From Diplonema japonicum (lineage: Eukaryota; Protista; Euglenozoa: Diplonemea), in NCBI GenBank assembly GCA_964019335.1, contig OZ025723.1, positions 402,626-466,625 on the forward strand: DNA of 64,000 bases, read 5' to 3'. The translations under genes were made by a program, and so were the position numbers. Shown here piece by piece: positions 71 through 64,000 of this stretch. Each line of letters begins with the position of its first letter. Within the stretch, counting starts at the first letter, position 1. The notes beneath the pieces are model-generated. The model was given only the letters and a program-made list of their open reading frames with translations, had not been told where the DNA came from and did not search any database.

Positions 71-3000
71 ATGTCACTGCTCGCATCAGGGATGCAGAGT
101 AGGTGGGGCAGGCTGTTGGAAAAGAAGAAATGTAAGCAGCCATTGGAAGGAGCACCCGATAGAAAGGAAAAGAAGGCGGTAGTAACGAAGATCGTGGCGT
201 TGTCGTCGTCTGCAAGCAACGCTGTGTGTCCTGAGTGCAAAGAGGGCGCTCGGCGTTTGGCGGTGGACACACAAGAGGAGTTCAAGATGCATGTCTTCAA
301 GTGCAGGCTCAAACACGGAACTGACCCGCGTCTCCCAGTCGTTTCTCTCGTACCACGCCCTCCCGTGATCGAAAAGGTACAATGGAACAGCAGTTCAAGC
401 AGAACCCCAACACCAGTCAAGGTCCCAGTTCCTCCTGCTGCTCTGCGTCCTGTGTGCTGCCCTCCCATTTCGATTATGATGAAGCCCAAAGGACAGCAAA
501 GAGACATCACCCCATCCGAGATATGCACTAGGGCAAACATACTAGCCATGAAGCGGCTTATTAAGGCACACAAAGGCCCTTCAAACCTTGTTAGCATTCT
601 GAAAGCAGCACAGCAGGAGACAGAGCTAGATTTGAGCGACATCGAGATCACGCCTGACGATGCAACAGCATTGGCGGTGCTTCTCGCAGACCACCCTTCT
701 GCTACTGTGGTGGATCTCGGCACCCTCAAGCCGGAGACGAAGCGGTTCATCGCACCCTTGCTGCTGGATGTGCTGCAAAAGAACAAGAACGTGGTGCACA
801 TCAACCACACCTCCTCGTTCGACGACAGAAGCAACGCTGTGATTGAGGACCGCCTCGAGAAGTCGATCAACGCCAAGTCGCTGAGCATGCAACACGACGA
901 GGTCAACAGGCTCACGCAGCAGTACGAAGTGTGGGCTAGCATCAGGGAGTCCCACCAGCAGCAATTCTCAGAGTCAGAGGAGATCATCAGAAAGGAAATC
1001 ATGCATCTGCACAGCACAGAGCGTGCGAAGCTCAGGAATGTGTTCAAAACGAATCTCGCTATGCTAGTTAAGAGGAGGCATCGCGTTGAGGGGCTGCTCC
1101 TGAGGCAAGTGCAGAGGAACGATTTAATGCTGGATGAAGAGCACAGAAGGCGGGAGATACACGTGATCGAGATGGGCGGCTTGCTCTGGCTCGTCATCAA
1201 TCACGAGGTGCTCTCGAGGGCGTACTTATTAGAGGTGCAGATCTACTACAGGAGGCAGCTGAAGATAGCAGAGGAGAAAGGTTTCAAAGCAAGCAAAGTG
1301 AAGGAAAAAACAAGGTTCGAGAGGGAGAGGCAGACGCGAGCGAGAATGGAAGAGCAGGAGAGTTGCAGCCGAGAGAGTGCGGACGACTGTCAGTGGTTCG
1401 AGAGATGCAAGCTGTACAGCCACTCCGAAGCGGGAAGGTCACACATCTTGTACAAAGAGTCGCAGGCGCAGATGAGGTCCGAAATGATGACACTGTGCGT
1501 GTCTATGCGTTGTGGTATCGAGAAGGAGGAGGAAGCTTCTCGGCAGTGGATTTACGAGCGCAAGCAGAACTACTTGATTCTCAAAGAGCAGGAGCGAACC
1601 CGTGCCCGTGAGCTCGTGGCGATTGAAGAAGTGTCTGCCAGGGTTGATATCGGGGGTGACTTCGTGAAGCTGATGAACATCTTAGGCGAAGAGATGAAGT
1701 ACTCGCTCGAGTGGCTCGACGAATGCGTCACGCTTCAGAACATCGAGATGGAGAAGGACAGGCTCCTCAACCATATGCCCGAAATCGTCATGTCTTCCTG
1801 TCTGGAGTTCAACACAAAGCCTTTCATCTATTTTGTACACTCATACAGCGGGATGGAACCCCCTGTCTTCATCACTACCTCGGCAAAGCTCAGCATCTCT
1901 CTGTCCCCCACGTGGGAGGACAATTACATGGAAATCATTGCTTCTAGGAACAAACAGATCAAGGTGGAGCGCAACTCAAACAACATACTGCTGAAAACAA
2001 GGGCAAAGAACTCAAAGGTGTTGAAGGGCATCTTCATGGAAGGCGACGAAAAGGTTGCTGTGGAACCGCCCATGGGTTTAGTGAAGGGAACGAACAAAAA
2101 GAAAGCTATGAAGACACTGCAGGCAGCAGTGAAGATAGGAATGCGGTTGTCGGAGAGTCTGCCTGCGTGTGAGATTGCTGAAGAGAAGACAAAAATCAAA
2201 GGAGGCAGCCTTACGTTGCGCCTGCAGCCGTCGGATACAGACCCGCCTTGGTTAGAAGATACTGTGATGCTGTCGTGCATTACGAGCTGGGATATGGAGG
2301 TGGACGGGGTCTCCCACGAAGGACGCGATGAGGTGAAGCTGCCGGCATCATGTTGGGACACCAGCTACGACGATGAAAGGCTGCAGGAAATCCCTTCTGG
2401 TAAGGTGCTGAAGATCTACGTGCCAAACGGCACGGAAGCCACAACAGCAATGCTGACAAATATCATGCGTAGTTGCCGATTCCAGACACCAGGGCATGGC
2501 ATCACAGGGCCCGTTGTTATAAGGATCCTGTTGGAGTCAAACCTGGTGTTCTCAAACTGCGATGGAGGCACCGTGGAGAGCTCAGCGGAGCTGTTGTGCG
2601 ATGTTGTGCTTGCAGCGCCCTTCATCTCGTACAGCCATGCTGATTACGAAACCGTGCAGTATTTAGAAGGCATGAAATCCGACGAGCTTCAGCTTGTCCC
2701 TGAGTCCTTTATCCTGACCGACCCGCCCACTATCACAAAAAAGAAAGGTCAGGACAATTTCACTGTGATGAGCGGCGGCCTCCAAGGCGGCGGCCTCTCG
2801 CTCACAAACTTTCACGATTCGTACCTCATCTTCGAGATCACGAAGGACTACACCCCAGACGACGTCATCGCCTTCAGAAACACTGCAAAGCTCTTCGTCG
2901 AAGACGACACGATTCACTTCAAAGACAAAGATGGCGACAATACCATTGGAAGGGTCACAAAGGGTGTCTTACTTCCCTGTTCAGAAGTTGTTGAAGGGGT

Positions 3001-5723
3001 GTCCTGCCAACCGAAATGCGTGTTGCATCTGTTCCATGAATCGAACCCTGGTCTCCTTGCTGCTGAACATGTAAGACAGCTTATCAGAGCTTTTAGGTTC
3101 ACTAATACATCACTTGCACCAGTTGAAGGTGTGCGGCAGGTGATACTAACAGTGGTGGACATCAACAGGTTCAGCAGCCAGATACAAATAGACGTTGAGG
3201 TCACCGGCGAGGACAACCCGACTGAGATGCACATCCCTAACCTTAAACTCATTGTAAGACCTTCGCAGGTCCCCGCCTCGCTGAAGCAACACGTCACCCC
3301 CAGCATCTACCCGCTGGCAGAGGGCGCCATCGTGCAGGACGTCGACACTGACAGGTTCACCGGCGGGTCGCTCTTTGTTCAGCTTTTCAACACAACAAAA
3401 AGCGAGGGCATATCTTTATGTACCTCGGAGCATCTGCTGGCTAGCATCATCCACCAGCACAACTTGAAAAGCGAAGCAGAGACGGAAGGGGAGGCGACCT
3501 TGATCGGAAGGGGACGCACCATTTCGATGACGTCCTTGAAGAGTGCGGTTGCAAGTTCTGTAGCTGGGGGAACTGCAGAAGTTGCGGTGGAGGGGAAAAC
3601 GGTTTTCTACAAAGGAAGAGAGGTGGGTGTTATCGAGAAAGGGGAGGTGACGGCAGAGGGGCATCTCGACCACGTTGACGGCGTCACGGAGCTGCTGATC
3701 AGGTTCAACAACAATGGGCTAATGTCCATCAGTGGATGTCAGGCATTACTGCGGCGTGTCGCACTGTCGACCTACGGAGCAAAGCAGGGGCTGCGAAACA
3801 TTGAAGTGACACTAACCATAGGGCCTACTGTAAACGGAGAACCTGAGACTGACTGTGAAGTGGTGATCCCCGAGTTCGACGAAGAGAAAAGCTGTGTGCT
3901 GACCGAGAAGATCACTGTGCGGCACACATTGCCTATGCTTACCATCCCTGAGAAGTACACACTTGCCGAGTATCGAGAAGGTACAGGCCCCCAGCGTCTG
4001 GCGCCCTTTGACCTCATCCACGACAAGCCTGGCTTCATCGAGAATTACACAAATGGTTTCATTGCTGTAGAGATCATAGAGGGAGGGTGTGCAGATGACT
4101 CCCTGGCTCTGCGGGAGGACGAGACCATCAAGTTGGTGGAGTCGAAGAAGCGTGCGTACACGAGATTCAAAGAAATCCGAAAGGATAAAATCAAAGAAAA
4201 GGAGCAGAACGCAGAAGAACAGGAGTCGCTTCCCCAGGTGACACCGCCTCCGAAGGTGATTGAGAGATGTTTTTCGGATGAGAAGTTGTCGATATTGCAG
4301 TCGACTCGGATGTCAGAGCTGAAGGATAGGATGCGCGACCACGTGAAAGAAGAGGCAAAAGAGAGACGAGAAAGACGGGAAAGCTTAATCCAAGCAGCGC
4401 AGGCGGAAATGAAGAACCTAGTGAAGGACCTGTCGAAGGCAAAGGACAAGGACATGCTGGCAGATGTGATGTTTAGCGACAAGCAGGTGGGCGTGCTGAG
4501 GAAGGCGCCCAACGGGTTATTCATCACATTCAAAGGGGAAGGTACAGCACGGCGGCATGCACTGGCCGTGTTGAAGAACCTCACTTATGCGAACACTTCA
4601 TCGGACCCGACGTCGCTGAAAAAACTGATGAGAGTCACCATCTCCGACAGCCCTCCCTCGTACAGTCAGTGCGTGTACGAGCTACAGGTGATACCGGTAT
4701 GTGCCATTCAACGCGAAACATCACACGCTGCAGGTGGACGACGTGACTGAAATCACGTTGCGCACAACTAAGCTAAAGTACACATCACAGGGAAGCAGCT
4801 CAGTTCCATGCTACTTATGCCCCTATGGAACAGCTTGTCTTACGGATGCGGACACAGAGTATTTTGACGGGGGACATCTGACGCTCCAACTGTCTACCGG
4901 CGGCACAAAAGGAGACCAGCTTGGCTTCGTTCCTTTGAAGCTCACAGATCAGCTACGAAAAATCACACCCTCCACGACTTGTACAGGTGAAGTGTTTGAT
5001 CTGAAGGTCACTGAGGACAGGAAGGTGCTGGCAACTGTCGGGGACACCGAGTTGCACGTCGCCACACTGAGCTTCGAATCTGACAAGAACATATTGAAGA
5101 TACTCTTTGTGAAGCTTGACGAAGAGTGCGTGTCACTTGCAATGGCATCCTTCATGCTGAACTGCGTTACCTTCAGCAACATGCAGGACACCAGGAAGAC
5201 CTCTACACGGACGTATCAGGTGAAGATAGCAGACGGTGGCAATCCTGTGGAAGGAAAAGCGAAGATGACCGTTGAGGTGGCTCCTCCGCTGTGCTGCTTC
5301 CTGCCTTTTTCGTATCTAATGGAGGCGAAGTACGAGGCTGAGATGTGCTTCAATGAACTGGCAAAGACAAAACTTACCATTGTCGCTGACAAGCTCGACA
5401 AACCGTACATAACTGGGACAGCCTTGGTTGAGGTGGACCTTGGGGAGGAACACGAGCCGATGCTGACGATACCCTCACAGTACAGTGTGAAGGAGGGAGG
5501 GCTGTATAAGGACCAGATGTATTATAGCAAGCTGGTTGCAACACCCTCTGCAATTAAGATGACTTTCACGTGGGCCTCGAAGGTCACAGCAAAGACACTG
5601 CAGCAGTTGCTACGTTCGATAACCTTTTCCTGCACACCTCAAGAGGTGAAGACAGCACACATTACCACAACCATCACATCGGAAACGGCCAGCACTTCCT
5701 GCACTGCAGTCGTCAAGTTCTGA
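71..5723 (+). CDS. Giant protein: coiled-coil N-terminal half plus ~6 cadherin/adhesin-like beta-sandwich repeats
   Basis: ORFs 71..4750 and 4701..5723 join in frame across a 37-nt GTATG..CAG intron (4697-4733; LQVIP|VDDVTE). Recurrent motifs D(V/A)DT..F.GG.L and [VL]..L[IL]R.[IF].F.N (e.g. AEHVRQLIRAFRFTNTSLAP, ALAVLKNLTYANTSSDP, LQQLLRSITFS). Confidence 0.7.
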
Positions 5724-5865
5724 GTTCTGTTCACCTCAATTTCCTTTCTTTTTTTCCAAAAAGAAAAAAAAAAAAAAAGAGGATCCTACTTCGGTCCTTT
5801 CTGATCTGTACCAAGTTATCGCGCTTACACTGCTTTGTCATCACTGCTCACCTCAGCATAAGAAA

Positions 5866-6964
5866 ATGGGTAAGAAAGGAGGAGTCCTGCTCGACAATGG
5901 GAAGACGGCGAAGCATTTGTATGTCCGCAATAAATATAAGGCCATACCATTATGAACACACAGGAGCCCCTTAGAAGCTCAGAAACAGGCTTTGAAGAAA
6001 AAGAGAGTACAGCAGAATGAAGAAATCAGGAGGAAGAAGAAGTTCATCGAGGCGATCAAGAATGACCCGGAGAGCATAAGACGAAAAGTAGCCTCGCTTG
6101 AAAAACAGGCAAAATCAGGGACGCTTTCGTTTCGGCAGAGGTGTGTTCTTGTTAACAAAACAAACAACAAGCAGGAATGAGAAGAATGAGATGAAGGAAC
6201 TGCTCGCGGAGTACGAGCCGAAGTTCAAAAAGGAAGCTGCCCTTCAGGCAAAGGGGTCCATGCTGGTATCAATGCAGAGCGCTTTTAAGCATGAGATGGC
6301 TGTTGAGGGTGGGGCACCCGACGGTGTCACAATGCAAGGCGTGCTAGTGAACGATGAGGTCCTTGCACCTGTTGCGGCACCGCCTTCAGCGCCTGTTGCT
6401 GAAAACCCAACCACCGAGTACCTGCCTCAGGTAGGGGGCACGCCCTTCCCTGTTGAGTCTGTGGTGGAAGGCGATATTGTGTCAGCTGCCTCTAACGTGG
6501 ATATGTCCCTCCTCCAGAAGAAGAAGGCCGAGGAAGCAGAGGAGTCTGAAATGAAGTGGAACCCCAACCTCATGGCATCCCTTGTCCCCAGCTCCGTCCT
6601 CAGGAGGAAGACTACCACTGCGGTGCAGTCGAAGATCCGTGCGCAGCAGTCCGCCTCGCTTTCCTCGACCATGGCGCCCGTCGAACCTGCCAAACCTGCA
6701 CAGCCCGCACCACAACCGAAACCAAAACAAACCAACAACTTCCGCACTGTGAACCTCGTCCCTGACTATGACGATGAGGACGACGACGACGACGACCTCA
6801 GCCTAGACGAGCCCACCTACACACCCGCGGCGGCATCGTCTTCTATGTTTTTCAACTCGAGCGGTGCCCTGAGCACAGCTACCGCAGCCTCATCAAAGCC
6901 TGAGCCCCAGGCGCCGGCTGCAGACCTTGACGAGGAATACAAGAAGTTCCTGGCAGGAATGTAG
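5866..6964 (+). CDS. WBP11: WW-domain-binding protein 11 (Wbp11/Saf1 family) splicing factor
   Basis: Introns 5919-5963 and 6141-6174 give MGKKGG..LSPLEAQKQALKKKRVQQNEEIRRKKK..KNDPESI, matching the Wbp11 N-terminal domain. C-terminal DLDEEYKKFLAGM resembles the WBP11 end motif. Confidence 0.7.
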
Positions 6965-50100: not shown

Positions 50101-50333
50101 AACAATATATATAAAAAAAGAAAATGTTTGTAGCCTGCTCGTTTAATAGATGCAGTTTCAGTTGCAATTTTCCATTATTATGCATCTCAGGAGAGACAAA
50201 TGAGGTCCTTACAGCCTGCCAATATGTGGGTGCTGTCTTGAAACTGTGCATCTCATGCATTAGTCTTGAAACTATGCATCTCATGCATGGCAAAAGTCAC
50301 GTTTCACAGGTTCGAATTTGGTTTGATTGCAAT

Positions 50334-51704
50334 ATGTCGCCTACACCGCGTGAATGCCTGGCGACGCAGCTCAGGAATGTAGCCTTACGTGTGATTCCTC
50401 AGGAAGAAGTTGTGCAGTTGGGAAATGCAGCGCTTAGGGAATTGACGGAAACCATCATAAAGCACACGAAGTGCCGCGTGAAGTCATGGGAGAAGGCAGG
50501 GTCAATGGGTAAGAATACTTCGATCTGCCTGAAGATAGACTACGACCTCGTGTTCTACATCGTAAACGGTGAGGAGGAGTCGGGGAGGTTCCTTGATGAC
50601 ACCGAAGATATTCTGAACCTGCACTTCCACGGCACCACGCCGGAAGACGTCAAGAAGAAAGGACGTTCTCTGGCATTTAACTTCAGAGGTTTCATGTTCG
50701 ATATTCTCCCAGCAACGTTTCTCCATGAAAACAGAGAAGAGCAGGTGAAGATTGCTATTAAAAAGAAGCGCGAGATGGCAGACAACACCACGTGGGGCCC
50801 GACCCTTGCACACGGAACTGTCATGTTTATGAAGGAGCAGGATGGGTTCTGCCATGAACTTGCCCGGCTCCTGAAGTTGTGGAGTAAAAGTGTGCTCATC
50901 CCGTCCTTCTTCAACGGCAGGTCGTTCATGCTGGAGCTCGTTGCTGCACTTGTGTCGGAAGAGATGCATGACACTGACATCCTGACCGGCTTATGCGCCG
51001 CCTTGGTGAAGCTGAGGGACTTCCGCAAGATCAACAAGATCTTCCAGACAAAGTTCTACAATGAAAGAGACGTGTCTGCCAAGCTGAAGAAGAGTACGCC
51101 ACTGCTGCTGGACCCAGTGGACCCTGCAAATAATTTGCTGTGCATACGCAGCCCAAAGAAGGAGGCGAACTTGGAATGCTTCGGGCAGTGTGCAGCACGG
51201 ACGCTAGAGGCAGTGGAATTGATCATGAAAGGGGCAAAACCGTGCATACTGGTAGAGATCTTCCGCCCTCAACCCAGCCCTGAGGTAGCGCTTTCCTTCA
51301 TTCCACACGAGTGGCTAGTTGGGAGTCCAGAGTCAGTGTCGGTGCTTCCTCAAGTGGTCCAGCCCTACGCAATAATCCGATCGTCAATCCAATTAAGAGA
51401 TCACAGCAAAGCTGCAGAGCTGACCAGTCACGTGCTTTGTGGACTCATTCATGCCGAACGTGAGATGGTGCCGGGTCGCGCTCCTCAAAAATCACTTGAA
51501 TCCGCGATTGACGTCTTCGAAAACAAAAAGAGAACCTGGACACCCAGCAAGGTCGCGACACATGAAAGCAAACACGTGACAATGTACATCCCCGTCGTGG
51601 AGGACAACACCTTGAAGCACATGCGCTCCAGTTTCAATATCAAAGAAAATCCTAGTGCTCCTGCGCAGAAAGACAGCAAAGCCGTGTACTGGCAAACAGA
51701 CTGA
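50334..51704 (+). CDS. 2'-5'-oligoadenylate synthetase (OAS)-like nucleotidyltransferase
   Basis: KAGSMGKNT..IDYDLVF, FDILPA, LARLLKLW, SFMLELV and PLLLDPVDPANNL parallel the OAS motifs GSxGKGT..DxDLV, FDVLPA, LIRLVKHW, YALELL and ILDPADP.GN; no introns. Confidence 0.85.
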   Translation: MSPTPRECLATQLRNVALRVIPQEEVVQLGNAALRELTETIIKHTKCRVKSWEKAGSMGKNTSICLKIDYDLVFYIVNGEEESGRFLDDTEDILNLHFHGTTPEDVKKKGRSLAFNFRGFMFDILPATFLHENREEQVKIAIKKKREMADNTTWGPTLAHGTVMFMKEQDGFCHELARLLKLWSKSVLIPSFFNGRSFMLELVAALVSEEMHDTDILTGLCAALVKLRDFRKINKIFQTKFYNERDVSAKLKKSTPLLLDPVDPANNLLCIRSPKKEANLECFGQCAARTLEAVELIMKGAKPCILVEIFRPQPSPEVALSFIPHEWLVGSPESVSVLPQVVQPYAIIRSSIQLRDHSKAAELTSHVLCGLIHAEREMVPGRAPQKSLESAIDVFENKKRTWTPSKVATHESKHVTMYIPVVEDNTLKHMRSSFNIKENPSAPAQKDSKAVYWQTD

Positions 51705-52968
51705 ACTGACCCCGTCCTCATGCCCGGCTCTGACCTGGTGCGCTCGTATCACATGTGGTTTTGCGATGATTAGCTGCCCATTTCAACAAACCTTGCTCCC
51801 TCTTTCATTTTTCTTTCCTTTTTCTGTTCCCTTGTTGCCTCTCTCTTTTGTTTTTCGATTGCCACATACCGCAGGTTGTCTCCGCCTTAAATGTTTCTTC
51901 TTTTTTTCCCCTTCTTTCTTGTTCTTACCTTTAATGGTGCGCAGGAATTTTAATTTAATCTTTTTCAGTCACGGCGTCAGTCGCGACTACAATTGAGTTT
52001 AGTACTGAAAACTTCTCTGATTATGCTCAGCATCATCAGTGTTGGTTCAGGAAAAATAAAAATCCTTTTCTTTCGTGTGTTTTTGTGATGTTCTGTTCGG
52101 CAGTAATTCCCATTGCATAAAACAGCGCAGATTTATTTTAATTATTACTCAAATGCAATTTGAGCAAAACGATAACAGGTTCTTGTTTGAAATATTTTAA
52201 ATTATTTCACGTGTTCCCGTCGAGTCCAGAAAATAGTTTTAAATTCTTTTTGTATTAACAATCTTGTTTGTCTGTAGACTAAATATTCGTTAGCAGCGCA
52301 GTTGGTTGATTTTATACAGGTTTCTTTAGAAAGAAGTCAACGCGTTCCGTGCCGCAACTTAAAATCGCTAGCGCACAAACAAACAAGCTGCAGAATAGTT
52401 TTTTCACAGTTTATTGGTTCATTAGTTTTCATCTCCTCGACAAACACGGGGCTACCAGACAGCGACCGCAGAACGGTGACCGACGAGTTTCTTCTTTCTT
52501 TTTCTTTTTCTTTTTCTATTTCCCGCTCCCTTTTTCCCCCTTTTTATTATTTTCTCAAGTCCCCCTTTTTTTATGCCAGATTTTTTTTTTCTCCCGCCTT
52601 GTTAGAAAAGTTTTAATATACTAATAAAAAAATAAAAAAAGTGAAAAGAGGAGTAGAAGACGATCCGGTGGGGGGCATGGGAACCATAAACCGTGTCTTC
52701 CATCGCGATCGGCAAGGCGGGGGCTTTTCCGTCCCATGGGTGAAAAGAGGCGGATAAAACCACTATTCCGGACCCCCCCCCAACACTGAGCATGCACTTT
52801 TTCCCCATACATACCTCTCTCGTTTATCAAAATATCACCATTTTTACGGCGGACGCCAAGAAAAAAAGCCAAGGAGAAGGAGTTTAGGGAGTAATTGAAA
52901 GACCTACGGCCCCAAAGAAGGCGGTGAAAACAGCCATGGTGGGCCAGCCCTGGCAGACAGGGAGCCTG

Positions 52969-53006
52969 ACCAACGATTCTAAAGCTACAGTTTCTGTACT
53001 TTATTG
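52969..53006 (+). other. Genomic spliced-leader exon copy 1
   Basis: ACCAACGATTCTAAAGCTACAGTTTCTGTACTTTATTG: conserved euglenozoan SL 3' end (CAGTTTCTGTACT.TATTG) and a diplonemid-like 5' end. Confidence 0.9.
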
Positions 53007-53045
53007 GTCGTTCGTGTTCTGCTGGTGCCTGAGTAACAGGTGCTT

Positions 53046-53252
53046 ATGGCCATGCCTGTCGTGTACTTGGGTGTTGTGTTCGCACTGAAGGCGTTCATGG
53101 TATGCAATTGTATATATATAATATTATATATATCCCCCCTTCCCCTAGAAAAACAGAGAGCCGATGGTGTTGAAAGGGCCCATGATGGTATACAACTGGA
53201 CACAAGTGGTGGTGAGTGCTGCAATGACCTACGAGTTGGGCAGGGTATGGGG

Positions 53253-53294
<42 letters not shown>

Positions 53295-53897
53295 CAGTAT
53301 TTCTCGATCCCCAACGTCTTTGCGCTTGGCCAAGACTTCACCGCGCACGCTGAGTTCTGGGTGTTCATCCATTTCCTGTCAAAGTCTCTGGACTGGTTCG
53401 ATACCATTTTCATCGTGCTTCGCAAGAAGGACAGACAGTTCAGTTTCCTTCACATCTACCACCACGCCTCCATCGGTGTGGTTTGGGGATGGCTGCTCCA
53501 GACTGGTTACGGGGGTGGTACGGGGTACTACGGTGCCTGGGTGAACTCCTTGGTGCACACCATCATGTACTTCCACTTCGGCTGGACCGCACTCGGGCTC
53601 AAAAACCCTTACAAGAAATTCATCACTACCTTCCAGATTTCACAGTTTTACAGCTGCATGCTCCACGCTGTCTTCGTACTTCTTTGGGACCAGGAGCACT
53701 TCCCCCTCAAGATTTGCATGATTCAGGTTGCCTACCACGTTACCATGATTTCGCTATTCACCGGGTTCTTCAAGGAGACCTACAAAAAGGTGCCGGAGAT
53801 CGCCAAGGCAATCCCTGCGGAAGATATTACGGCTCACGACGTGTCGAAGCCGGGGTTGAAGAAGAGGGACACACCCCTCCCAGAGTTCACTGAATGA
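53046..53897 (+). CDS. ELO fatty-acid (PUFA-type) elongase, HxxHH box; start uncertain (possible exon 52677-52739)
   Basis: Introns 53100-53148 and 53245-53297 give KNREPMVLKGPMMVYN; KSLDWFDT, FLHIYHH, NSLVHTIMY, TTFQISQF. Confidence 0.88.
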
Positions 53898-55061: not shown

Positions 55062-57211
55062 ATGGCAAAAATTAAATATCTTCGTGTCGTGTTGATGACA
55101 CTAATGATGAGTTCGCAACTGATAGGTTGTGGGGCGCTGTCTGCAAAGGAGCTGCAGAAGGTTATAGCTGAGAATGACGGGGCCACCGGGGGGAGTATGC
55201 ATCCTAACCACATTGCTTTGGTGAAAAAATTACGGGAAGAGGGGAAACTGGCAGAACCCCAAGCCCCAGCAGGCGCCACCACAGGAATGGTGGTTCAAGA
55301 AGGCACAGTAAAGGACTCCTTAAACGTTCCCTGCCCTTCCGACACCCGCATTTGCCCCGGTGGGTCATCTGTGAAGCGGGACCCAACAAACAACTGCAAC
55401 TACCACCCCTGTCCAGAGCCTGAACCCGCGCAGGTCCTATGCACCACCGATGTCTTCACCTGCCCTGATGGGCGTAGTGTTCCAAGGGATCCTGCCAACA
55501 ACTGCGAGTTTGTCTGTACAGCAGCAGAATGCGAAAGATGAAGAAAAGCTGTGCACTGCCGATGTCTTCACCTGCCCTGATGGGCGTACTGTTGTCCCCA
55601 GGGATCCTGCCAACAACTGCGAGTTCAAACCTTGTCCTAAAAAGGAAGACCCCGTGCTGTGCACCACCGATGTCTTCACCTGCCCTGATGGGCGCACCGT
55701 TCCAAGGGATCCAGCTAACAATTGTGAGTTCAAGCCCTGCCTTGTCGAGGCGGAGCATAAAGAAGTGGCAGAACCCGAACAAGTGCTGTGCACCACCGAT
55801 GTCTTCACCTGCCCTGATGGAAACACTGTCCCCAGGGATCCACGAAACAACTGTGCCTTTGTTCCCTGCCCTTTGAAGGAGGAGCCAGTGTGCACCACCG
55901 ATGTCTTCACCTGCCCTGATGGGAGCTCTGTTCCAAGGGACCCCTCTAACAACTGCGAGTTCAGGCCCTGCCCTCCACAGGAGGAAGCAGAACCGGTACC
56001 GGAACCGGTGCTGTGCACCACCGATGTCTTCACCTGCCCTGATGGGCGTAGTGTTCCAAGGGATCCTGCCAACAACTGCGAGTTTGCACCCTGCCCTGTA
56101 CAGCAGCAGAATGCGAAAGATGAAGAGAAGCTGTGCACTGCCGATGTCTTCACCTGCCCTGATGGGCGTACTGTTGTCCCCAGGGATCCTGCCAACAACT
56201 GCGAGTTTAACCTTGTCCTCAAGAGGAAGACCCCGTGCTGTGCACCACCGATGTCTTCACCTGCCCTGATGGGCGCACCGTTCCAAGGGATCCCTCTAAC
56301 AACTGCGAGTTCAGGCCCTGCCTTGTCGAGGCGGAGCACAAAAAAGTGGCAGAACCCGAACAAGTGCTGTGCACCACTGATGTCTTCACCTGCCCTGATG
56401 GGAGCTCTGTTCCAAGGGACCCCTCTAACAACTGCGAGTTCAAGCTGCCCTGTACAGCAGGATGCTCAAGAAGAAGAGAAGCTGTGCACCACTGATGTCT
56501 TCACCTGTCCCGATGGAAAAAGTGTTGTTTCCAGGGACCCAAGCAACAACTGCGAGTTCAAGCCCTGTCCTATTGTGGAGGAGCAAGAAAAAGAAGTGGA
56601 AGAAGAAGAAGCCGCAGTTGCGGATCAAGTGCTGTGCACCACCGATGTCTTCACTTGCCCTGATGGGAGCGCTGTTCCAAGGGACCCGAGCAACGATTGC
56701 AACTTCAAGCCCTGCCCTCCACAGGAGGAAGCAGAACCGGTACCGGAACCGGTCATGTGCACCACTGATGTCTTCACCTGCCCTGATGGAAGTGCTGTTC
56801 CAAGGGACCCTGCCAACAACTGCGAGTTCAAGTCTTGCCCTGTTGAGGAAGAGGCGGTGCAACCGGATCTAGTGGAGCATCACCCCGTCCCCGTGATGTG
56901 CTCGACCGATGTCTTGACCTGCCCTGATGGGGTAACTGTTCCAAGGGATTTTACCAACAACTGCGAATTCAAACCTTGTCCCGCCAAAGAAGGTGTTGAA
57001 CAAGTGCTGTGCACCACCGATGTCTTCATCTGCCCTGATAAGAGTGCTGTTGCACGAGACCCTGCCAAAAACTGTGATTTTGTACCCTGTCCCGTCCAGC
57101 AGCAGCAGCAGCAGCAGCAGGAGGTACAAGAACAACAATGCGCCACAGATTTCTTCACCTGCCCTGATGGGCACACTGTCTTTAGGGACCCGATCCACAA
57201 CTGTGCCTTTG
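55062..57211 (+). pseudogene. Secreted Cys-rich tandem-repeat protein (16 x CTTDVFTCPDG..VPRDP.NNCEF.PCP), frameshifted and 3'-truncated by the retroelement
   Basis: Signal-peptide-like start, 16 four-Cys repeats. Frame breaks near 55511, 56208 and 56444 (decay or assembly error). The last repeat stops at NCAF, directly at the SL copy. Confidence 0.75.
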
Positions 57212-57248
57212 CCAACGATTCTAAAGCTACAGTTTCTGTACTTTATTG
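57212..57248 (+). other. Genomic spliced-leader exon copy 2, forming the 5' end of the retrotransposon
   Basis: CCAACGATTCTAAAGCTACAGTTTCTGTACTTTATTG; 57212-57273 is identical to 52970-53031 over 62 nt. Confidence 0.9.
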
Positions 57249-57908
57249 GTCGTTCGTGTTCTGCTGGTGCCTGCCGCCTCTGCCTGGGTTTGCTGCTGCG
57301 TCCGTCGTCCGTCGTCGCCGTCGTCCGGGGGGGTTGTTTTGCCTGTCGGCCTGCCCGCCGCTTACCGAAAGGATCCCCTCCCCCAACACACACTTTAAAA
57401 AAAAATAAAAAAAATAAAAAATGGATCCAAGACGGAACGCAAGAGGAGGTGACCGCGCAAACCGCAGGGAGAAGGAACCCCGACAGGCCGCCAGGCTGCA
57501 CACGACGCCAGGGCCGACCCAACCAGCCTATCTGGTTGGGCAGTATGAATCCCCACCCCCACCCCCTAGATCCCCCCACCCCCCTTTAGAAAAAAAAAAT
57601 AATAAAATAAAAAAATCACTAGCAGAGACCGCGGTTTTGACCGCCACTGCTACAGCCACGGCCGCCCCAGCCGCCCTGAACGCCGCAGCCGACCCTGCCG
57701 CCCTGATCGCCGCAACTGAGACCGCCGCAGCCGCCCCTGCCGCAGCCACGACCGCCGCGACCACGACCCCTGCAGCCGACCCTGCTATTGTTGAAGAGGG
57801 AAGAAAAGAGGGAGAAAAAAAGGGGTGGGTACTGGTGTATAGTGAACACCCTCCCGGGTTGAGGACGGGCCCGGCCCCTGCCTTCCCGAAAGCCCTGCTT
57901 TCAGGAAA

Positions 57909-60900
57909 GTGGCAAACCCGTGTGTGTGGAAGGGTCAGGGGTGCCACGACGAGTGCAAAAAGGCGGTGCGAAGGGAAGGGGAATACACGACCCCCCCGCC
58001 GGCCCCGACGAGGACCGAGTTACCCAGCCTGGAAGCCATAGCTGCCATGAACGTCACGACCATGGGGTCGATCCCGACGAGCCTTCAAAGACTGTGGGGG
58101 CTTACCCTTAAGCACACTCTGGGCCGGGCGGTGAAGGACAACACAGAGGAGGCTTGGCTGCTGGTGGCGATGCTCCCCAAAGCCTGCCTGTGGAAGAAGA
58201 GGGGAGGGAAGAAGCGGGACAAGGAGACGGAGCTGAGTGTCCAGGCCAGATTGGAGGAGTGGGAGAAGGGAAATTACATGGCCCTCTGGAATAAGCTGGA
58301 ATCAGGTGAGAAGGGGGAACCTAAGAACGACGAGGTCTCTAAGGTCGCCAGGGCCACGGAACTGTGCAGCAAAGGGAGGTTCTCGGCAGGAAACGCGGCG
58401 CTTGTAGCCCAGGGGCTGGCGGAAGACAATGAGGATTGTTGGAGAGCGCTGCAGAGCAAACATCCAGAGCCACTACACCCCCAATGGGACAACCCGGCGA
58501 AGACGAAGGAAGCGGTAGAAGTCTTGCCGGAAGAAGTGCTGGACGCAATCAGGGACTTCCCGAGGGGGACTGCTGCGGGACCGACTGGTCTGAGAGCCCA
58601 GCACATCAAGGACGCGGTGGACGGAGCTTTTGAGTCTCAAGGCTGTTTGATGTCGGTGACGAGGGCAGTCAACGCATTAGCTAGAGGCACGGCCCCTAGG
58701 GAGGTGGCTCCGCTGATGGCAGGGGCGAACCTTGTAGCCCTCAAGAAGAACGACAGGGACGTGCGGCCCATAGCCGTTGGGGATGTGCTGCGTCGGCTGG
58801 TGGGGAAATCCCTTGTGAAGAAGATCGCTCCGGAAGTGGCCTCTTCGTACCTGAAGAAAGGCGGCCAGGTGGGGGTATCGGTCCCTGCTGGAATGGAGGC
58901 GGCTATACACACCATCAGGCAGTATGTGGACAGGGAACGGGGCAACAAGCAGGAAAACAAGGTGATCCTCAAGATCGACTACGCCAACGCCTTCAACAGT
59001 GTTTGTCGGAGACAGCTGTGCTCACAGGCCTATGAGCAAGCGTCGGGGCTGTATGCGTGGGCCGATTGGTGCTACAGGGTGCCCTCCCAATTATACTACA
59101 ACGGAAAGGTGATTAAGTCCCAGGAAGGGGTGCAACAGGGGGACCCGATGGGACCACTGCTGTTCTCTCTGGCCATCCAACCCCTGGTGAACAAGATAAG
59201 TGAAGACTGCAACCTGGACATCCTCCAGTTCTACCTGGACGATGGCGTCCTTGTGGGGAATGTGGATGAAGTGAGAAAGGCGTACAACATCTTGTGTGAG
59301 CTGAGCGGAATGATAGGGCTGAAAGTGAAACCCCAGAAGTGCGAGCTCATATGGGTTAGTGGCGACCTCCCCCAGACAGTGGAGGACACAGGCTTCGATG
59401 GCCTGACAGAAGAGAATTTCCACAAAGAGAGGAACTTCATGCTCCTGGGGGCGCCGATAGGATCGCCGGAGTACACGCAAGCCTTTCTGAACAAACGCTT
59501 GGACGCGCTGGAAGAGAACTTCGACATGCTGACCAAGGTGGGGAGGCAGACAGGGTACACACTTCTCCGGTATTGCAGCTCATACAGCAAACTGGTGTTT
59601 TACATGAGAGTGGTCCCAGACTCGCATGTGGGAGGGGTCATGCACAGGTTCGACGAGATGGTGCGGAAGACGATGTCGAAGGTGTGCGGCATGCAGTTCG
59701 AGAACGGGTCGAAAGAATGGCAGCAGGCGAAACTGTCCGTAAAAGTCGGTGGGCTTGGGATGAGGAGCTGCCAGGAGCACCTGCGCGCGGCCAACATGGC
59801 TTCGAGGGCGTCGACGATGAAGCTGTGCAAGGAGCTGGATCCCAAATACGAACATGGGCTGGAAGGGGGTGTATGGGGGAGCTGGCTCGAGTGGTTCAAC
59901 AGGACGAAGGGCGGCATGCAGATTACACCCGACATGGTGGCCAAGGCCCCCCACATCTGCAGCCAGAGGTGGCTCTCTAGGGTGCTTGATGAGAAGGCTC
60001 TGGAGGACCTCTTGGCGAAAGCAGATGCACGCTCGAGAGCGAGGTTGATGTCGGAGTCAATGCACTATGCGGGGGCGTGGTTGACGGCGACGCCTGACTT
60101 CTACAACCAGCTGTCGGACAACGAGTTTGGGGCTCTGATCAAGTGGTGGTTGGGGGCTCCGGTCTACAAGCAGGGTGAGAGCTGCCACGACCCGAGGTGC
60201 AAGACTGAGGGGATGGACGTATGGGGTGACCATGCCCAGGGATGCGGCAACGCCAGGATTGCGAGGCACGACCGGGTGAAGGAGACCATCCACAGACACT
60301 GTCAGTGGGCCGGGGTGAGCGCAACGATGGAGAAGACGGGGCTGATCCCGGGGTCGTCCCAGCGCCCGGCGGACGTGTTCTTCCCAGGTGGGGTGGGGGG
60401 TTCCCGCCCAATGGCTATGGACGTGGTCATCGTGCACCCGAGGAACGAGTCTTGTGTCAACCAGGCGGCGAAGACTGCGGGGTACGCAGCGGCGAAGGCG
60501 GAACACTACAAGCGCCAGAAGTATGAGGCGGAGCTCGCCAAGACACGCGTGGCCTTTGTACCTTTCGCGATGGAGACCTTTGGGGGGTTCGGGGAGGCAG
60601 CAGTCTACCTCACGAAGAAACTGTCCAGGAGCATAGCTGCGCGGGCTCACGGGGACAGAGTCTCGATACACAGGCGTGTGGTCCAAGAGGTGTCAACGGC
60701 CATGATGAGATCGATAGCAGGGGCGCTGTTAGTCAAAGGGCCTGTACAGTTGGATCCCGGGCCCCCGGTACCGGACGGCGAAGAGGAAAAAAAGGACAAC
60801 GAGGAAGCGAACAACGAACCCAACACTGAATCCAACACTGACCTCACAGAGGACTCCTTCGGCAATGAAAAAACCACCGAAGCTGAGGAGTCGTCCGAGA

Positions 60901-62816
60901 GGGAAGTGAAGGGACAGGGAGGCGGACCCCCAATCACGGTGGCCCACCAGCTGGATGCCCTTCTGGAGCAGACGAAGAAGGACCTGGACGCCCGAATGCA
61001 GCAGCAGCGAAAGGCGGAACCGATGGAGGGTGGAACACAAGGGAAAGCGGGAGCAGGACTCGAAGCAGCCTCGCCGGGAGGAGAAGACACGGAGATGGCC
61101 GGAACAGGATCCAGCGAGAGGGCTGGGCAGGGAGGGGAGCTTGACCCGAAGGCCCAGGAAGATGGGAAGAGACAAGGGGCGACTGACGCTGCGGTGAACC
61201 AGACCTTGGACGAGTGTCCTAAGGGGGATACGGAGGCCCAGAGGGACTCGAACAAGGGGGACCAGAGTGCGACAACTGCTACGAGGAAGATGACCGTGAG
61301 CGAATTCTGTAGGGAACAAGCTGCGAAGAGACAGGGCGGTGGGAGGACTCTGAAGCCGCAGGCGGATGACGCCCCCGAAGGGACCAAAGAGGGCGGGAAC
61401 GCACCGAGCGGAGGCAGCCAGTCGGGGCCTGACACACCTAGGGGTGGGATCCAGACGCCGGAGGGAGATCAGCTGATGGGAGTCGGGGCACCGGAAAGGG
61501 AACAGCAGGTGGAAGTAGGGGGAGACTTCGTTCAGCTTGACCCGATTGATGTGGTGATGGGCATCCCAATTCCGAGAGCGATGGTGCCACTGAGGGCGAG
61601 GCCGGGGGACCTGCTCAAGTTCATCATCCAGTTCGAGGGCCGGGTGGAGATCATCCTTGAAGAAGGAACGGACCCTGGAAGGGAGAGGACTGAGGAGATG
61701 CTTCTTGCGAAGGCCGAGTCGCTGGGTGTTCCGCTGGAGGTGGCTATGGCTGGCCAGATTGGTATCGCTGGACTTGGATACATGATGGTAAAGCAGTACT
61801 TCGCAAGCTTGGAAGGTGGGTCGGACGGAGAGCGCCGCAGCCGCATTGTGGGTTGTGAGGTGCAGAAGTCGGAAACATACCGCGAGTTCGAGTTCCCGAG
61901 GACGGTCCAGGATTTCCAGATCACGTACGCGTGTGGGTGTTCGGCGGTGCAACCTGTTCGTTTCAAGGGTGGCGTGCTCAAGGGGACTCTGGAAACGGCA
62001 TGGAGGGTGGTCAAGTTGCAGACCCGGGGGTGCAGACACCACCCGACACCGGGGAAGGAAGGGGTAGTGGGCATTGCGGCGGGAGCCGGCGCTACCAAGG
62101 TGACACTACGTGAGTTCTTGGAGAGGTGCGACGCAAGGATAAGGGCCCCAGTGGGAAAGGTCAAGGACCTGATCAAAGTGAAGGCGTGGGTGAGGGATGG
62201 AAGGAAGGTCACCCTCGACGTCTACGAGGGGAGGGGGCCCTGCGAGAAGGAGACGAGGCGCACTGTCCAGGACCATCTGCGGAAGATGGGTGTTGAAGAG
62301 GTCGACCTGCAGTCAGCGGTGGTGACGGTCCCGGGGTTGTTCGAGGACGTCTCCTTTGAGAGGTACCTTGGGCTGTTGGCCCGGAAGAAGGAGGAAGACA
62401 GGGAGAGGCGGCCTGAGGTGGTTGCCACGGACCTCCCCACCCTGGAAGAGCTGAAGTGGAGCAAGAAGGACAAGAAGCGGGCCCGGGCCCGATCGGCCAG
62501 TACTGACTCGGATTGTGTGGAGGGTGGCTACATCTATCTGAAGGGTACGGGGGCGGATGGCACCGTGGTCGAAGCCAACATATGCAGGGGTGAGCTCAAG
62601 GGGATGACCGGGCCCCAGTTCAAGTTCTTGGCGGAGCACAGGTTGATGGAAGAGCTGGGGAGCGACGACCTGGTGCGGGACACGGTCAAGGTGCGCAACA
62701 AGGAGAACTGGGCCCCGGTGAACAGTGCGGTGGCTTGGCTGCAGCTCGAGTCGGGGAGGGCACGGGTGGGGCCCATACCCCACAAGAAGAGGTCCAAAGG
62801 CTCGCTGGCCAGATAG
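57909..62816 (+). CDS. Retrotransposon polyprotein: reverse transcriptase + CCHC finger + restriction-like endonuclease + C-terminal extension
   Basis: AAGPTGLRAQH, RPIAVG..RRLVGK, KIDYANAFNS, GVQQGDPMGP, FYLDDG, LLGAPIG; CHDPRC..HAQGC; RHD, RPADV, MDV, K..KY, PFAMETFGG. The true start is probably upstream (57421 frame, frameshifted). Confidence 0.92.
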   Translation: MANPCVWKGQGCHDECKKAVRREGEYTTPPPAPTRTELPSLEAIAAMNVTTMGSIPTSLQRLWGLTLKHTLGRAVKDNTEEAWLLVAMLPKACLWKKRGGKKRDKETELSVQARLEEWEKGNYMALWNKLESGEKGEPKNDEVSKVARATELCSKGRFSAGNAALVAQGLAEDNEDCWRALQSKHPEPLHPQWDNPAKTKEAVEVLPEEVLDAIRDFPRGTAAGPTGLRAQHIKDAVDGAFESQGCLMSVTRAVNALARGTAPREVAPLMAGANLVALKKNDRDVRPIAVGDVLRRLVGKSLVKKIAPEVASSYLKKGGQVGVSVPAGMEAAIHTIRQYVDRERGNKQENKVILKIDYANAFNSVCRRQLCSQAYEQASGLYAWADWCYRVPSQLYYNGKVIKSQEGVQQGDPMGPLLFSLAIQPLVNKISEDCNLDILQFYLDDGVLVGNVDEVRKAYNILCELSGMIGLKVKPQKCELIWVSGDLPQTVEDTGFDGLTEENFHKERNFMLLGAPIGSPEYTQAFLNKRLDALEENFDMLTKVGRQTGYTLLRYCSSYSKLVFYMRVVPDSHVGGVMHRFDEMVRKTMSKVCGMQFENGSKEWQQAKLSVKVGGLGMRSCQEHLRAANMASRASTMKLCKELDPKYEHGLEGGVWGSWLEWFNRTKGGMQITPDMVAKAPHICSQRWLSRVLDEKALEDLLAKADARSRARLMSESMHYAGAWLTATPDFYNQLSDNEFGALIKWWLGAPVYKQGESCHDPRCKTEGMDVWGDHAQGCGNARIARHDRVKETIHRHCQWAGVSATMEKTGLIPGSSQRPADVFFPGGVGGSRPMAMDVVIVHPRNESCVNQAAKTAGYAAAKAEHYKRQKYEAELAKTRVAFVPFAMETFGGFGEAAVYLTKKLSRSIAARAHGDRVSIHRRVVQEVSTAMMRSIAGALLVKGPVQLDPGPPVPDGEEEKKDNEEANNEPNTESNTDLTEDSFGNEKTTEAEESSEREVKGQGGGPPITVAHQLDALLEQTKKDLDARMQQQRKAEPMEGGTQGKAGAGLEAASPGGEDTEMAGTGSSERAGQGGELDPKAQEDGKRQGATDAAVNQTLDECPKGDTEAQRDSNKGDQSATTATRKMTVSEFCREQAAKRQGGGRTLKPQADDAPEGTKEGGNAPSGGSQSGPDTPRGGIQTPEGDQLMGVGAPEREQQVEVGGDFVQLDPIDVVMGIPIPRAMVPLRARPGDLLKFIIQFEGRVEIILEEGTDPGRERTEEMLLAKAESLGVPLEVAMAGQIGIAGLGYMMVKQYFASLEGGSDGERRSRIVGCEVQKSETYREFEFPRTVQDFQITYACGCSAVQPVRFKGGVLKGTLETAWRVVKLQTRGCRHHPTPGKEGVVGIAAGAGATKVTLREFLERCDARIRAPVGKVKDLIKVKAWVRDGRKVTLDVYEGRGPCEKETRRTVQDHLRKMGVEEVDLQSAVVTVPGLFEDVSFERYLGLLARKKEEDRERRPEVVATDLPTLEELKWSKKDKKRARARSASTDSDCVEGGYIYLKGTGADGTVVEANICRGELKGMTGPQFKFLAEHRLMEELGSDDLVRDTVKVRNKENWAPVNSAVAWLQLESGRARVGPIPHKKRSKGSLAR

Positions 62817-63072
62817 GCCAGCGGGGGTGTGGGGGGCTGTTCTCCCCCCCCCCCCCGCCATAGGAAGATGTGAAACTTTTTTTTTTTTTTTTCTGAGAAA
62901 AAAAAAAAAGGGAAAAATAAAAGAATAGGGAACAGGTGCTACAACGGCCAGGCTAGATAGAATCACTTAGATTTTTTTTTTTTTTTCCTTTTTTTTTTTC
63001 TTTTTGTTTTTCTTTTTTTTTTTATTTTTCTGTTTTTCTTTTTCTTTTTGAAGTGGAACCATCTCGGTCGAC

Positions 63073-63112
<40 letters not shown>

Positions 63113-63568
63113 CTTTTTTCTTTTTTCTTTTGTGGTGATGTGTTTTTCCTGTTTTTGATTTTCTTCTTCCCCCGCTCTATGCTTTTTCGCATGGACATTG
63201 GTCACTCTGCCCCTTTCCCCTTTTTTGATTCTCCCTCTTTCCCCCTCCTAAATTTTACCCCCTGCCCCACTCATTCCTCCCTAGTATGTTTTTGAATTTG
63301 CCTCTTCTTCTTTTAAGCCTTTTTTGAGATTTTTATTTTTGAATTTTTATCATTTGGAGTCTTCTTCTTCCCCTCTCCCTCCCATAAAGAAAAAGAGAAA
63401 CCCATGCCTTCCTCCCAGGTTGGAACTTGATTGTCTGTTTTGGAATATTTTTATTTTCTCTTAAGATTTATCGTGCCTTGTGTGTCTTTTGAAGAAAAAA
63501 AAAAAACTCGATAAAATTTCAGTGTGCATGGGGGTGCTCACTGTTTGAAAAAAAAAAAAAAACATTCT

Positions 63569-64000
63569 GCAAACCCGCAAACCCGCAAACCCGCAAACCC
63601 GCAAACCCGCAAACCCGCAAACCCGCAAACCCGCAAACCCGCAAACCCGCAAACCCGCAAACCCGCAAACCCGCAAACCCGCAAACCCGCAAACCCGCAA
63701 ACCCGCAAACCCGCAAACCCGCAAACCCGCAAACCCGCAAACCCGCAAACCCGCAAACCCGCAAACCCGCAAACCCGCAAACCCGCAAACCCGCAAACCC
63801 GCAAACCCGCAAACCCGCAAACCCGCAAACCCGCAAACCCGCAAACCCGCAAACCCGCAAACCCGCAAACCCGCAAACCCGCAAACCCGCAAACCCGCAA
63901 ACCCGCAAACCCGCAAACCCGCAAACCCGCAAACCCGCAAACCCGCAAACCCGCAAACCCGCAAACCCGCAAACCCGCAAACCCGCAAACCCGCAAACCC
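63569..64000. repeat. Perfect 8-bp tandem array (GCAAACCC)n = (TTTGCGGG)n on the minus strand, telomere-like
   Basis: 54 uninterrupted units running to the window edge. Confidence 0.95.

Follow-up and report, generated by a model that had tools for sequence, protein, structure and literature searches.

The window analysed here is a stretch of 64,000 nucleotides from the marine diplonemid Diplonema japonicum (C76:402626-466625, assembly label G000), and its last base is at once the end of the contig and the right end of chromosome 76. At this end we find pieces of a retrotransposon family stacked behind one another, the first of which begins with a DNA-encoded spliced leader (SL). Euglenozoan mRNAs all require such a leader, which they receive by trans-splicing, and gene-specific promoters are largely absent from euglenozoan genomes. 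For reference we used the 39-nt SL, and a 22-nt core of it for counting in the whole genome; family-A leaders, the type found in the window, were counted genome-wide (n=79), and 53 heads were read letter by letter. The underlying assembly, peDipJapo1.1 of Diplonema japonicum YPF1604, is built from HiFi reads at 102-fold coverage with a quality value (QV) of 59 and comprises 62,535,345 bp in 118 chromosomes; the genome note that describes it makes no mention of telomeres, transposons or spliced leaders (PMC13598402).

The stack at the right end of chromosome 76

All features of the stack lie on the forward strand. It starts where a host gene for a secreted-looking Cys-rich repeat protein (55062-57211) is cut in the middle of a repeat (..HNCAF) at 57211, with the reading frame running on into the SL. 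The protein has no Pfam family match, and the rest of the gene does not appear downstream of the element in the window. Bases 3-39 of the SL follow at 57212-57248, identical to the exon of the SL-RNA genes, as the head of family A. The next letters are GTCGTTCGTGTTCTGCTGG, over a longer stretch GTCGTTCGTG.., and the leader, a 5' untranslated region (UTR), begins GTCGTTCG and occupies 57249-57420. The ATG at 57421 opens the first frame of the element, of which an N-terminal fragment is left that breaks off after ..GGAAAGTGG at 57912, element base 701. A single terminal octamer CAAACCCG (57913-57920) sits exactly at this homology break. Behind it lies the 5'-truncated main reading frame (57921-62816), which encodes the reverse transcriptase (RT), a CCHC finger with a PD-(D/E)XK endonuclease and a C-terminal part of ~600 aa, followed by the 3' UTR with its eroded tail (62817-63568: ..GTGTGTCTTTTGAAG, A12, a 41-nt insert, A15, CATTCT). 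Finally, a terminal (CAAACCCG)n array runs from 63569 to the contig end at 64000; the same array is found with the same polarity at other contig ends. A first-pass annotation of this DNA had correctly described an SL exon without its first 2 nt, joined directly to the leader with GTCGTT, with a protein-coding repeat (..NCAF) instead of an SL promoter upstream and neither an SL remnant nor a target-site duplication downstream. The junction of the head with a broken gene that has lost its distal part fits a terminal deletion that was closed by the element.

The locus is not part of an SL-RNA gene array. The true SL-RNA genes read SL+GTACCCAATC.., have an intron of ~92 nt and a T-run, a tandem spacing of 352 bp, an adjacent 5S rRNA gene and a conserved upstream flank, ..GGGAGGTT. 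Their SL+GTACCC junction occurs nine times in the assembly, only six times together with the promoter flank (C4, C15, C51, C59), and the promoter-flanked genes sampled (L011, L029) have AA as their first two bases. At the window locus none of the array features, that is normal intron, upstream flank, tandem units or 5S neighbour, is present. GTCGTT.. has no likeness to the real SL intron past the GT, and the idea that it is simply the normal intron is ruled out by the genes themselves, which read SL+GTACCC. The statement that the head stands outside any SL-RNA array thus holds, with the true genes lying elsewhere.

When the whole genome was searched with the DNA of 57212-63560, at least 25 copies at 97-100% identity were obtained that cover only query positions 710 (57921) to 6295 (63506), while the upstream blocks of the family gave at least 41 at 97-100% identity, values that speak for a young family. 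In the sister copies, the sequence upstream of the body start is different, conserved and coding, and the frame is open over 2,132 codons including an OTU protease domain. The frame of the body extends at least 500 aa further upstream in these other copies, and the window body lacks that part together with the protease. On the other side of the break, the 5' regions of 11 family-A copies agree with the window as far as ..GGAAAGTGG (57912), after which they read GAGGCCCTGTC.. (canonical ..GGAAAGTGG|GAGGCCC); the first frame, which starts at the ATG of 57421, remains open for at least 452 aa in sister copies. Because the homology blocks end at 57912 and start at 57921 with an exact octamer between them, we read 57212-57912 as an eroded, once-capped SL-headed fragment and the sequence from 57921 onward as a separate 5'-truncated copy. 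The octamer would then be a fossil chromosome cap between the two fragments. The earlier description of 57212-62920 as one element accordingly has to be given up in favour of two fragments of the same family joined via a terminal octamer.

One could also think of 57212-63568 as a single element that suffered an internal deletion of ~3 kb, given that elsewhere head and body occur as parts of one family, with the SL 3.6-3.9 kb ahead of the body (C42, C38, C58, C77, C118, C75). This is very improbable in our view, since the 8 nt at the break are exactly the terminal octamer, in its sole internal occurrence in the 64 kb, and since heads that are cut at other points (L005, L012, L024, L057) are likewise capped by the CAAACCCG repeat. 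An assembly chimera is scarcely credible: the region is highly repeated subtelomeric sequence, but the HiFi assembly is deep and of high quality (PMC13598402), and junctions of these kinds are seen repeatedly, at many ends and beside different flanks.

The 3' end needed correction as well. It had been placed at 62920, which is an A-rich spot within the 3' UTR; homology to the family continues to ~63506 and the eroded tail to 63568. In sister copies, ..GTGTGTCTTTTGAAG, A18-20 and CATTCT-CAAGTCCCCCTTTTT are followed by at least one 26-nt repeat, in some copies several, and by a terminal poly(A) 7-45 nt long. Compared with these, the tail in the window is eroded to the CATTCT at 63568, directly before the array, and the 26-nt repeats and the poly(A) are absent.

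The element family and its position at chromosome ends

The window body contains an RT with the YLDD motif at 59232 (RVT_1, E=1.3e-16) and a CCHC finger plus PD-(D/E)XK endonuclease at 60183-60512, and the RT and CCHC/RHD/E/PD/D/K endonuclease motifs are all intact. Ten residues are invariant over 24 homologues: C759, C764, H775, C779, H787, E808, P820, D822, D838 and K868. In the full-length frame (L068:1-1500) an OTU-like cysteine protease (PF02338, E=5e-13) precedes the RT, and the database relative P0005 has the same OTU and RT domain pair. Neither the first reading frame nor the C-terminal 635 aa matched a Pfam family. The RT-endonuclease part matches 401 database proteins, of which the named ones are Diplonema papillatum sequences auto-annotated as SLACS. 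When a profile of 24 sequences was compared with solved structures, R2 proteins gave the best match (E=1e-30), and LINE-1 ORF2 scored E=1e-11. With R2 proteins as the best match, the sequence places the family among the restriction-like-endonuclease long interspersed nuclear elements (LINEs), and its membership of the CRE clade is putative. The first-pass label "CRE/SLACS-type" was therefore apt for the domain order, RT followed by a C-terminal CCHC finger and restriction-like endonuclease, but not for the target: no copy is inserted in the exon of an SL-RNA gene with SL-derived flanks, the upstream flanks differ and show no promoter, and no SL remnant is found at the 3' side.

From the spacing of 3.6-3.9 kb between SL and body on at least six chromosomes, the full length is estimated at ~9.3 kb, a value that includes a middle part of 0.7-0.9 kb that was not read. 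Families A and B are 82% identical over the first 720 nt. Family-B heads (L018, compared with window 57212-57931, and C9:683-9952) precede their bodies by the same ~3.7 kb, the bodies being 98-99% identical, and such near-identical bodies behind diverged heads suggest mosaic or recombinant elements. At C99:342575-361810, near a chromosome end, at least three tandem units with a 6,021-bp period join query 710-3669 to 5204-6295 by an internal deletion.

The position and orientation of the family in the genome are highly regular. We found 67 of the 79 family-A heads within ~25 kb of a chromosome end, and 66 of these 67 point outward; among the first 100 SL matches listed, those within 25 kb of an end comprise 50 outward and 4 inward ones. 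At every end examined, the poly(A) faces the tip and the SL head the chromosome interior. The ectopic integration proposed in the first-pass annotation is, in such a family, not at arbitrary sites. The tails consist of 7-45 nt of poly(A), behind which comes a CCCGCAAA.. array, other DNA or the head of the next element. Intact tails of poly(A)+CCCGCAAA are seen in L067, L059 and L033; intact tail/array junctions are few and some tails adjoin other DNA. Additionally, octamers adjoin arbitrarily truncated sequences in several phases, as in de novo capping. TTAGGG arrays are absent from the genome. The ends that bear the C/A-rich (CAAACCCG)n are those of the window (63569-64000) and of L012, L032, L033, L005, L024, L067 and L070, which are all that were examined, and for the terminal overhang the alternatives are a UUUGCGGG-type polarity or its complement. 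End priming of the Drosophila HeT-A/TART type was considered and rejected, as there the poly(A) faces the centromere and the 5' end the tip, the reverse of the orientation seen here with its distal poly(A) and proximal SL head.

We propose that target-primed reverse transcription inserts new copies into the octamer array. A nick at GGGTTT^G would open the G-rich strand, which would then pair with the poly(A) tail of the element RNA, and priming in this manner would make every copy point outward. The ends would then erode and be re-capped with octamers. For the window, the order of events may have been the following: an SL-headed copy was joined to the broken host gene, eroded to 701 nt and capped; a 5'-truncated copy then landed one octamer further out, and its tail was eroded and capped again.

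Origin of the SL on the element DNA

The 22-nt SL core has 228 matches in the genome and none in reversed-pattern controls. In 76 of the 79 family-A leaders, the SL (..TTATTG) stands directly upstream, so that SL exons with GT donors are indeed dispersed around the genome, as had been supposed. The 53 heads that were read have more than 30 different upstream flanks. Terminal octamers precede 7 of them, 5 follow the tail of another element, 2 follow fragments of another head, and the remaining 39 lie behind other DNA. Base 2 of the SL is A in 43 of the 53, whereas base 1 is uniformly distributed (T15/C14/A13/G11, chi-square p=0.88). The copies therefore stop nearly always at SL base 2, which fits the earlier idea of reverse transcription almost to the cap. 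In kinetoplastids, the first SL base is N6,N6,2'-O-trimethyladenosine, which is unable to base-pair; by analogy, a similar block at the cap base in diplonemids would explain the stop.

The SL is identical in families A and B despite their 82% leader identity, and it is therefore either renewed or selected. SL heads are also present on at least five other, unrelated downstream sequences, one of them with a long frame (L007) and some seemingly non-coding. At C24:7178, 17837, 28496 and 39079, near the left end of chromosome 24, SL matches on the minus strand follow one another at ~10.66 kb, a spacing that suggests a tandem array of large SL-headed units. In an old head (L056, C58:506.9-507.3 kb), many CpG-to-TpG/CpA changes have accumulated in the leader, while its 55 nt of SL sequence show no change. 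The aberrant SL of L013 was tried as a heritable marker and discarded; it is unique to one copy and stutter-like.

How the SL gets onto the element is indicated by SL-SL tandems. We detected eight of them in families A and B, including one at the opposite end of chromosome 76; seven read SL|TTTCTG.. (SL+TTTCTGTACTTTATTG+leader) and one SL|CTACAG... The SL contains only two AGs, and each of the eight junctions directly follows one of them. From this we conclude that trans-splicing onto DNA-encoded heads occurs: transcripts of such heads appear, to judge from the junction sequences, to be trans-spliced at the internal AG and then copied back into DNA. The DNA copies would start with the SL because they were reverse-transcribed from RNAs with the SL at the 5' end, the copying coming to a halt at SL base 2, one step short of the base next to the cap. 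As an acceptor site is found in none of the copies where the SL stands, the SL would now be carried in the DNA as the element's own 5' module. The claim that the element was copied from an SL-capped RNA thus stands as far as the signature of SL-headed RNA and trans-splicing are concerned. Of the two source forms it predicted, neither is in the assembly, which contains no AG|GTCGTT master copy and no copy with an SL-gene upstream flank followed by SL+GTCGT.

The second of these missing forms bears on an escape from an interrupted SL-RNA gene in the manner of CRE/SLACS, by which a master in an SL gene would be driven by the SL promoter and its copies would land elsewhere. The SL+GT of the heads keeps the exon/donor junction of the gene, two contigs (C15, C59) end in SL/5S arrays that may be under-assembled, and the Diplonema papillatum relatives are auto-named SLACS. 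Beyond the missing flanked copy, however, GTCGTT.. departs from the real intron after the GT, the SL stands on several unrelated downstream families, and none of the copies is flanked by an SL-derived duplication. We regard such an escape as quite improbable.

Taken together, we consider it probable, though far from assured, that the locus is a terminal retro-element stack in which SL-bearing RNA was reverse-transcribed, copies entered the octamer array pointing outward, and erosion and re-capping followed. Several points weigh against this. The evidence base is the assembly sequence, for the 57211/57212 junction and the transcript 5' ends as for the rest, and the length estimate spans the unread middle. 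The (CAAACCCG)n strand that runs 5'->3' to the end is C/A-rich, opposite to known telomeres. Trans-splicing of SL-headed copies should yield SL-SL forms, yet only eight were found and single perfect heads dominate; nor is there an AG|GTCGTT master from which these perfect heads could be regenerated. Since trans-splicing of SL-headed DNA yields only SL-SL, the RNA of the perfect heads must begin at base 1 of the DNA-encoded SL, through either a start or a processing step there. A ribozyme that defines the 5' end was rejected, as no Rfam family is found in the head.

Further points against it come from the junctions, and they speak for template switching, in which the RT would leave the 5' end of an SL-less element RNA, jump to the exon/intron boundary of the SL RNA or to a free SL exon and copy to base 2. 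All six independent head families (L001-L027 heads) start with G after the SL, mostly GT, so that 1-3 nt agree with GTA, the start of the true intron; in trans-spliced transcripts of related species, taken from metatranscriptomes, G comes first after the SL in only 22 of 117 (19%). The junctions are also heterogeneous, with an extra TG in L062, an extra G in others (GGTGG vs GTGG), and in L009 an SL joined ~110 nt into the leader, where sister copies have no AG. L004:1484-1700 (C2:150.6 kb) joins bases 2 to ~121 of the SL RNA, and with them most of its intron, to mRNA-like sequence. This looks, from its structure, like an RT template-switch chimera, which would show that such switches happen; it has an open frame of at least 471 aa, an upstream flank that is not an SL-gene promoter, and a resemblance to U6-L1 chimeras. 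Stuttered partial SLs beside octamers also favour the switch; two to three copies of CCAACGATTCTAAAGCTACAGTTT and SL fragments stand directly against terminal octamers at L024:1700-1760, L018/L037 and L044. The same G can be viewed in terms of RNA structure. G40/U41 after the SL would restore pairs with C3/A2 of stem I of the SL RNA, and in family A the first 7 nt of the leader are predicted to pair with SL bases 5-11 (GTCGTT with bases 5-9) and to lengthen an SL-RNA-like stem I, although the z-score of the fold is not significant; alternatively, the G or GT is microhomology from a template switch at the exon/intron boundary. Against switching as the general route, there are ~219 exon-only heads but just 9 with an intron, 6 of them real genes, although it is full SL RNA that should be the abundant acceptor. 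Moreover, the position of 8/8 SL-SL junctions right after AG is a splicing signature, and switching requires element RNAs that start exactly past a DNA-encoded SL. As the source of the heads, we judge template switching unlikely, if clearly worth keeping in view, and we continue to favour the copying of SL-bearing RNA.

Transcripts of retro-elements were not found among 120 SL-bearing metatranscriptome contigs. Three metatranscriptome contigs from related species (L076, L082, L127) read SL followed by SL bases 6-39; they represent relict leaders of other diplonemids or else artefacts of the libraries.

A second family-A head is present further inside the window. It comprises the SL from base 2 to 39 at 52970-53006 and the same first 25 nt of the leader, to 53031 on the forward strand, and it adjoins the 5' UTR and the ATG of an ELO fatty-acid elongase gene (52970-53897; Pfam ELO, E=3e-36), with SL and leader placed exactly at its 5' UTR. 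Similar truncated heads precede other ATG-bearing sequences in L054 and L009. The border between chromosome-specific sequence and a block shared with the subtelomeres L034, L046, L060 and L068 falls at 52540-52972, where a lone 26-nt tail repeat (..TTCTCAAGTCCCCCTTTTT) is seen. Ahead of it, a 526-aa frame at 50124-51701 with a weak match to domain 2 of 2'-5'-oligoadenylate synthetase (OAS1_C, E=8e-5) is the last chromosome-specific gene before the subtelomere.

More tentatively, and with doubt prevailing, one may speculate that the SL head is a working, portable 5' module. RNA would start at SL base 1, adopt a stem-I-like fold and be a pre-spliced, capped mRNA without any trans-splicing; the head could lend its 5' end to neighbours such as ELO at 52970 and, together with the inverted octamer, the elements would build and repair chromosome ends.

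Known systems and biological meaning

The nearest comparison is with CRE1/CRE2, SLACS and CZAR of the trypanosomatids. They too are euglenozoan retrotransposons without long terminal repeats (non-LTR) that combine an RT with a C-terminal CCHC finger and restriction-like endonuclease, and their element RNA also begins with SL sequence. The insertion site of the CRE elements is a fixed position in the exon of SL-RNA genes, and of the SL they have only the first bases, which the interrupted gene supplies. In contrast, the D. japonicum family has a whole SL exon as its head, is never found in an SL gene, targets chromosome ends and encodes an OTU protease. Homologues in Diplonema papillatum have been annotated as SLACS (PMC10161547).

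With the DinoSL relict retrogenes of dinoflagellates, the family shares a DNA-encoded SL at the 5' end of retro-copies, and tandem truncated leaders there are attributed to re-trans-splicing at an AG within the encoded leader (PMC5585692, PMC6050394). The traits by which such relicts are recognised are present here, with 228 SL cores and 7+1 SL-SL junctions that all follow an AG. Those relicts, however, are scattered copies of host genes, whereas here we see autonomous retrotransposons with a stable 5' module, mostly a single perfect SL, at chromosome ends.

TRAS/SART of Bombyx and MoTeR of Magnaporthe, which belongs to the CRE group, likewise have a fixed orientation in terminal repeats, tails that abut the repeat, and head-to-tail stacks with truncated members (MoTeR is cited in PMC4640811). 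The subtelomeric position in one orientation that marks telomere-repeat LINEs is found here with 67/79 heads near ends and 66 outward. The repeat differs, being an octamer with inverted strand polarity, and none of TRAS/SART or MoTeR is known to begin with an SL.

R2 proteins, the best match among solved structures (E=1e-30), share the order RT, CCHC and endonuclease. R2 targets 28S rDNA and has its 5' end trimmed by a ribozyme, whereas no ribozyme family was detected in the D. japonicum head. Finally, Pr77 of L1Tc/ingi, again a euglenozoan LINE, comprises first bases that define the transcript start without trans-splicing (PMC1874656). It offers a known case of a 5' module making the RNA end of an element, although Pr77 is not SL sequence and a promoter role of the SL head is hypothetical here.

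In the papers searched, SL-headed retrotransposons stacked at chromosome tips appear not to have been described. A complete leader in retrotransposon DNA raises the testable question of whether a leader-headed copy can make its own mature-looking mRNA, and the 76 SL+GT heads of family A offer splice donors and 5' ends, ready for use, beside genes. The near-invariant stop at SL base 2 would indirectly report a diplonemid cap modification that blocks base pairing. The confinement to the tips ties the biology of the transposon to end maintenance, with its scars of erosion and re-capping and a non-TTAGGG octamer whose C/A-rich strand faces the end. If the SL head is indeed a portable 5' module, the elements would obtain correctly capped mRNA without trans-splicing in a genome without ordinary gene promoters, truncated heads could pass a 5' end to neighbouring host genes such as the ELO gene at 52970, and the elements would, together with the octamer of inverted polarity, build and repair the chromosome ends.

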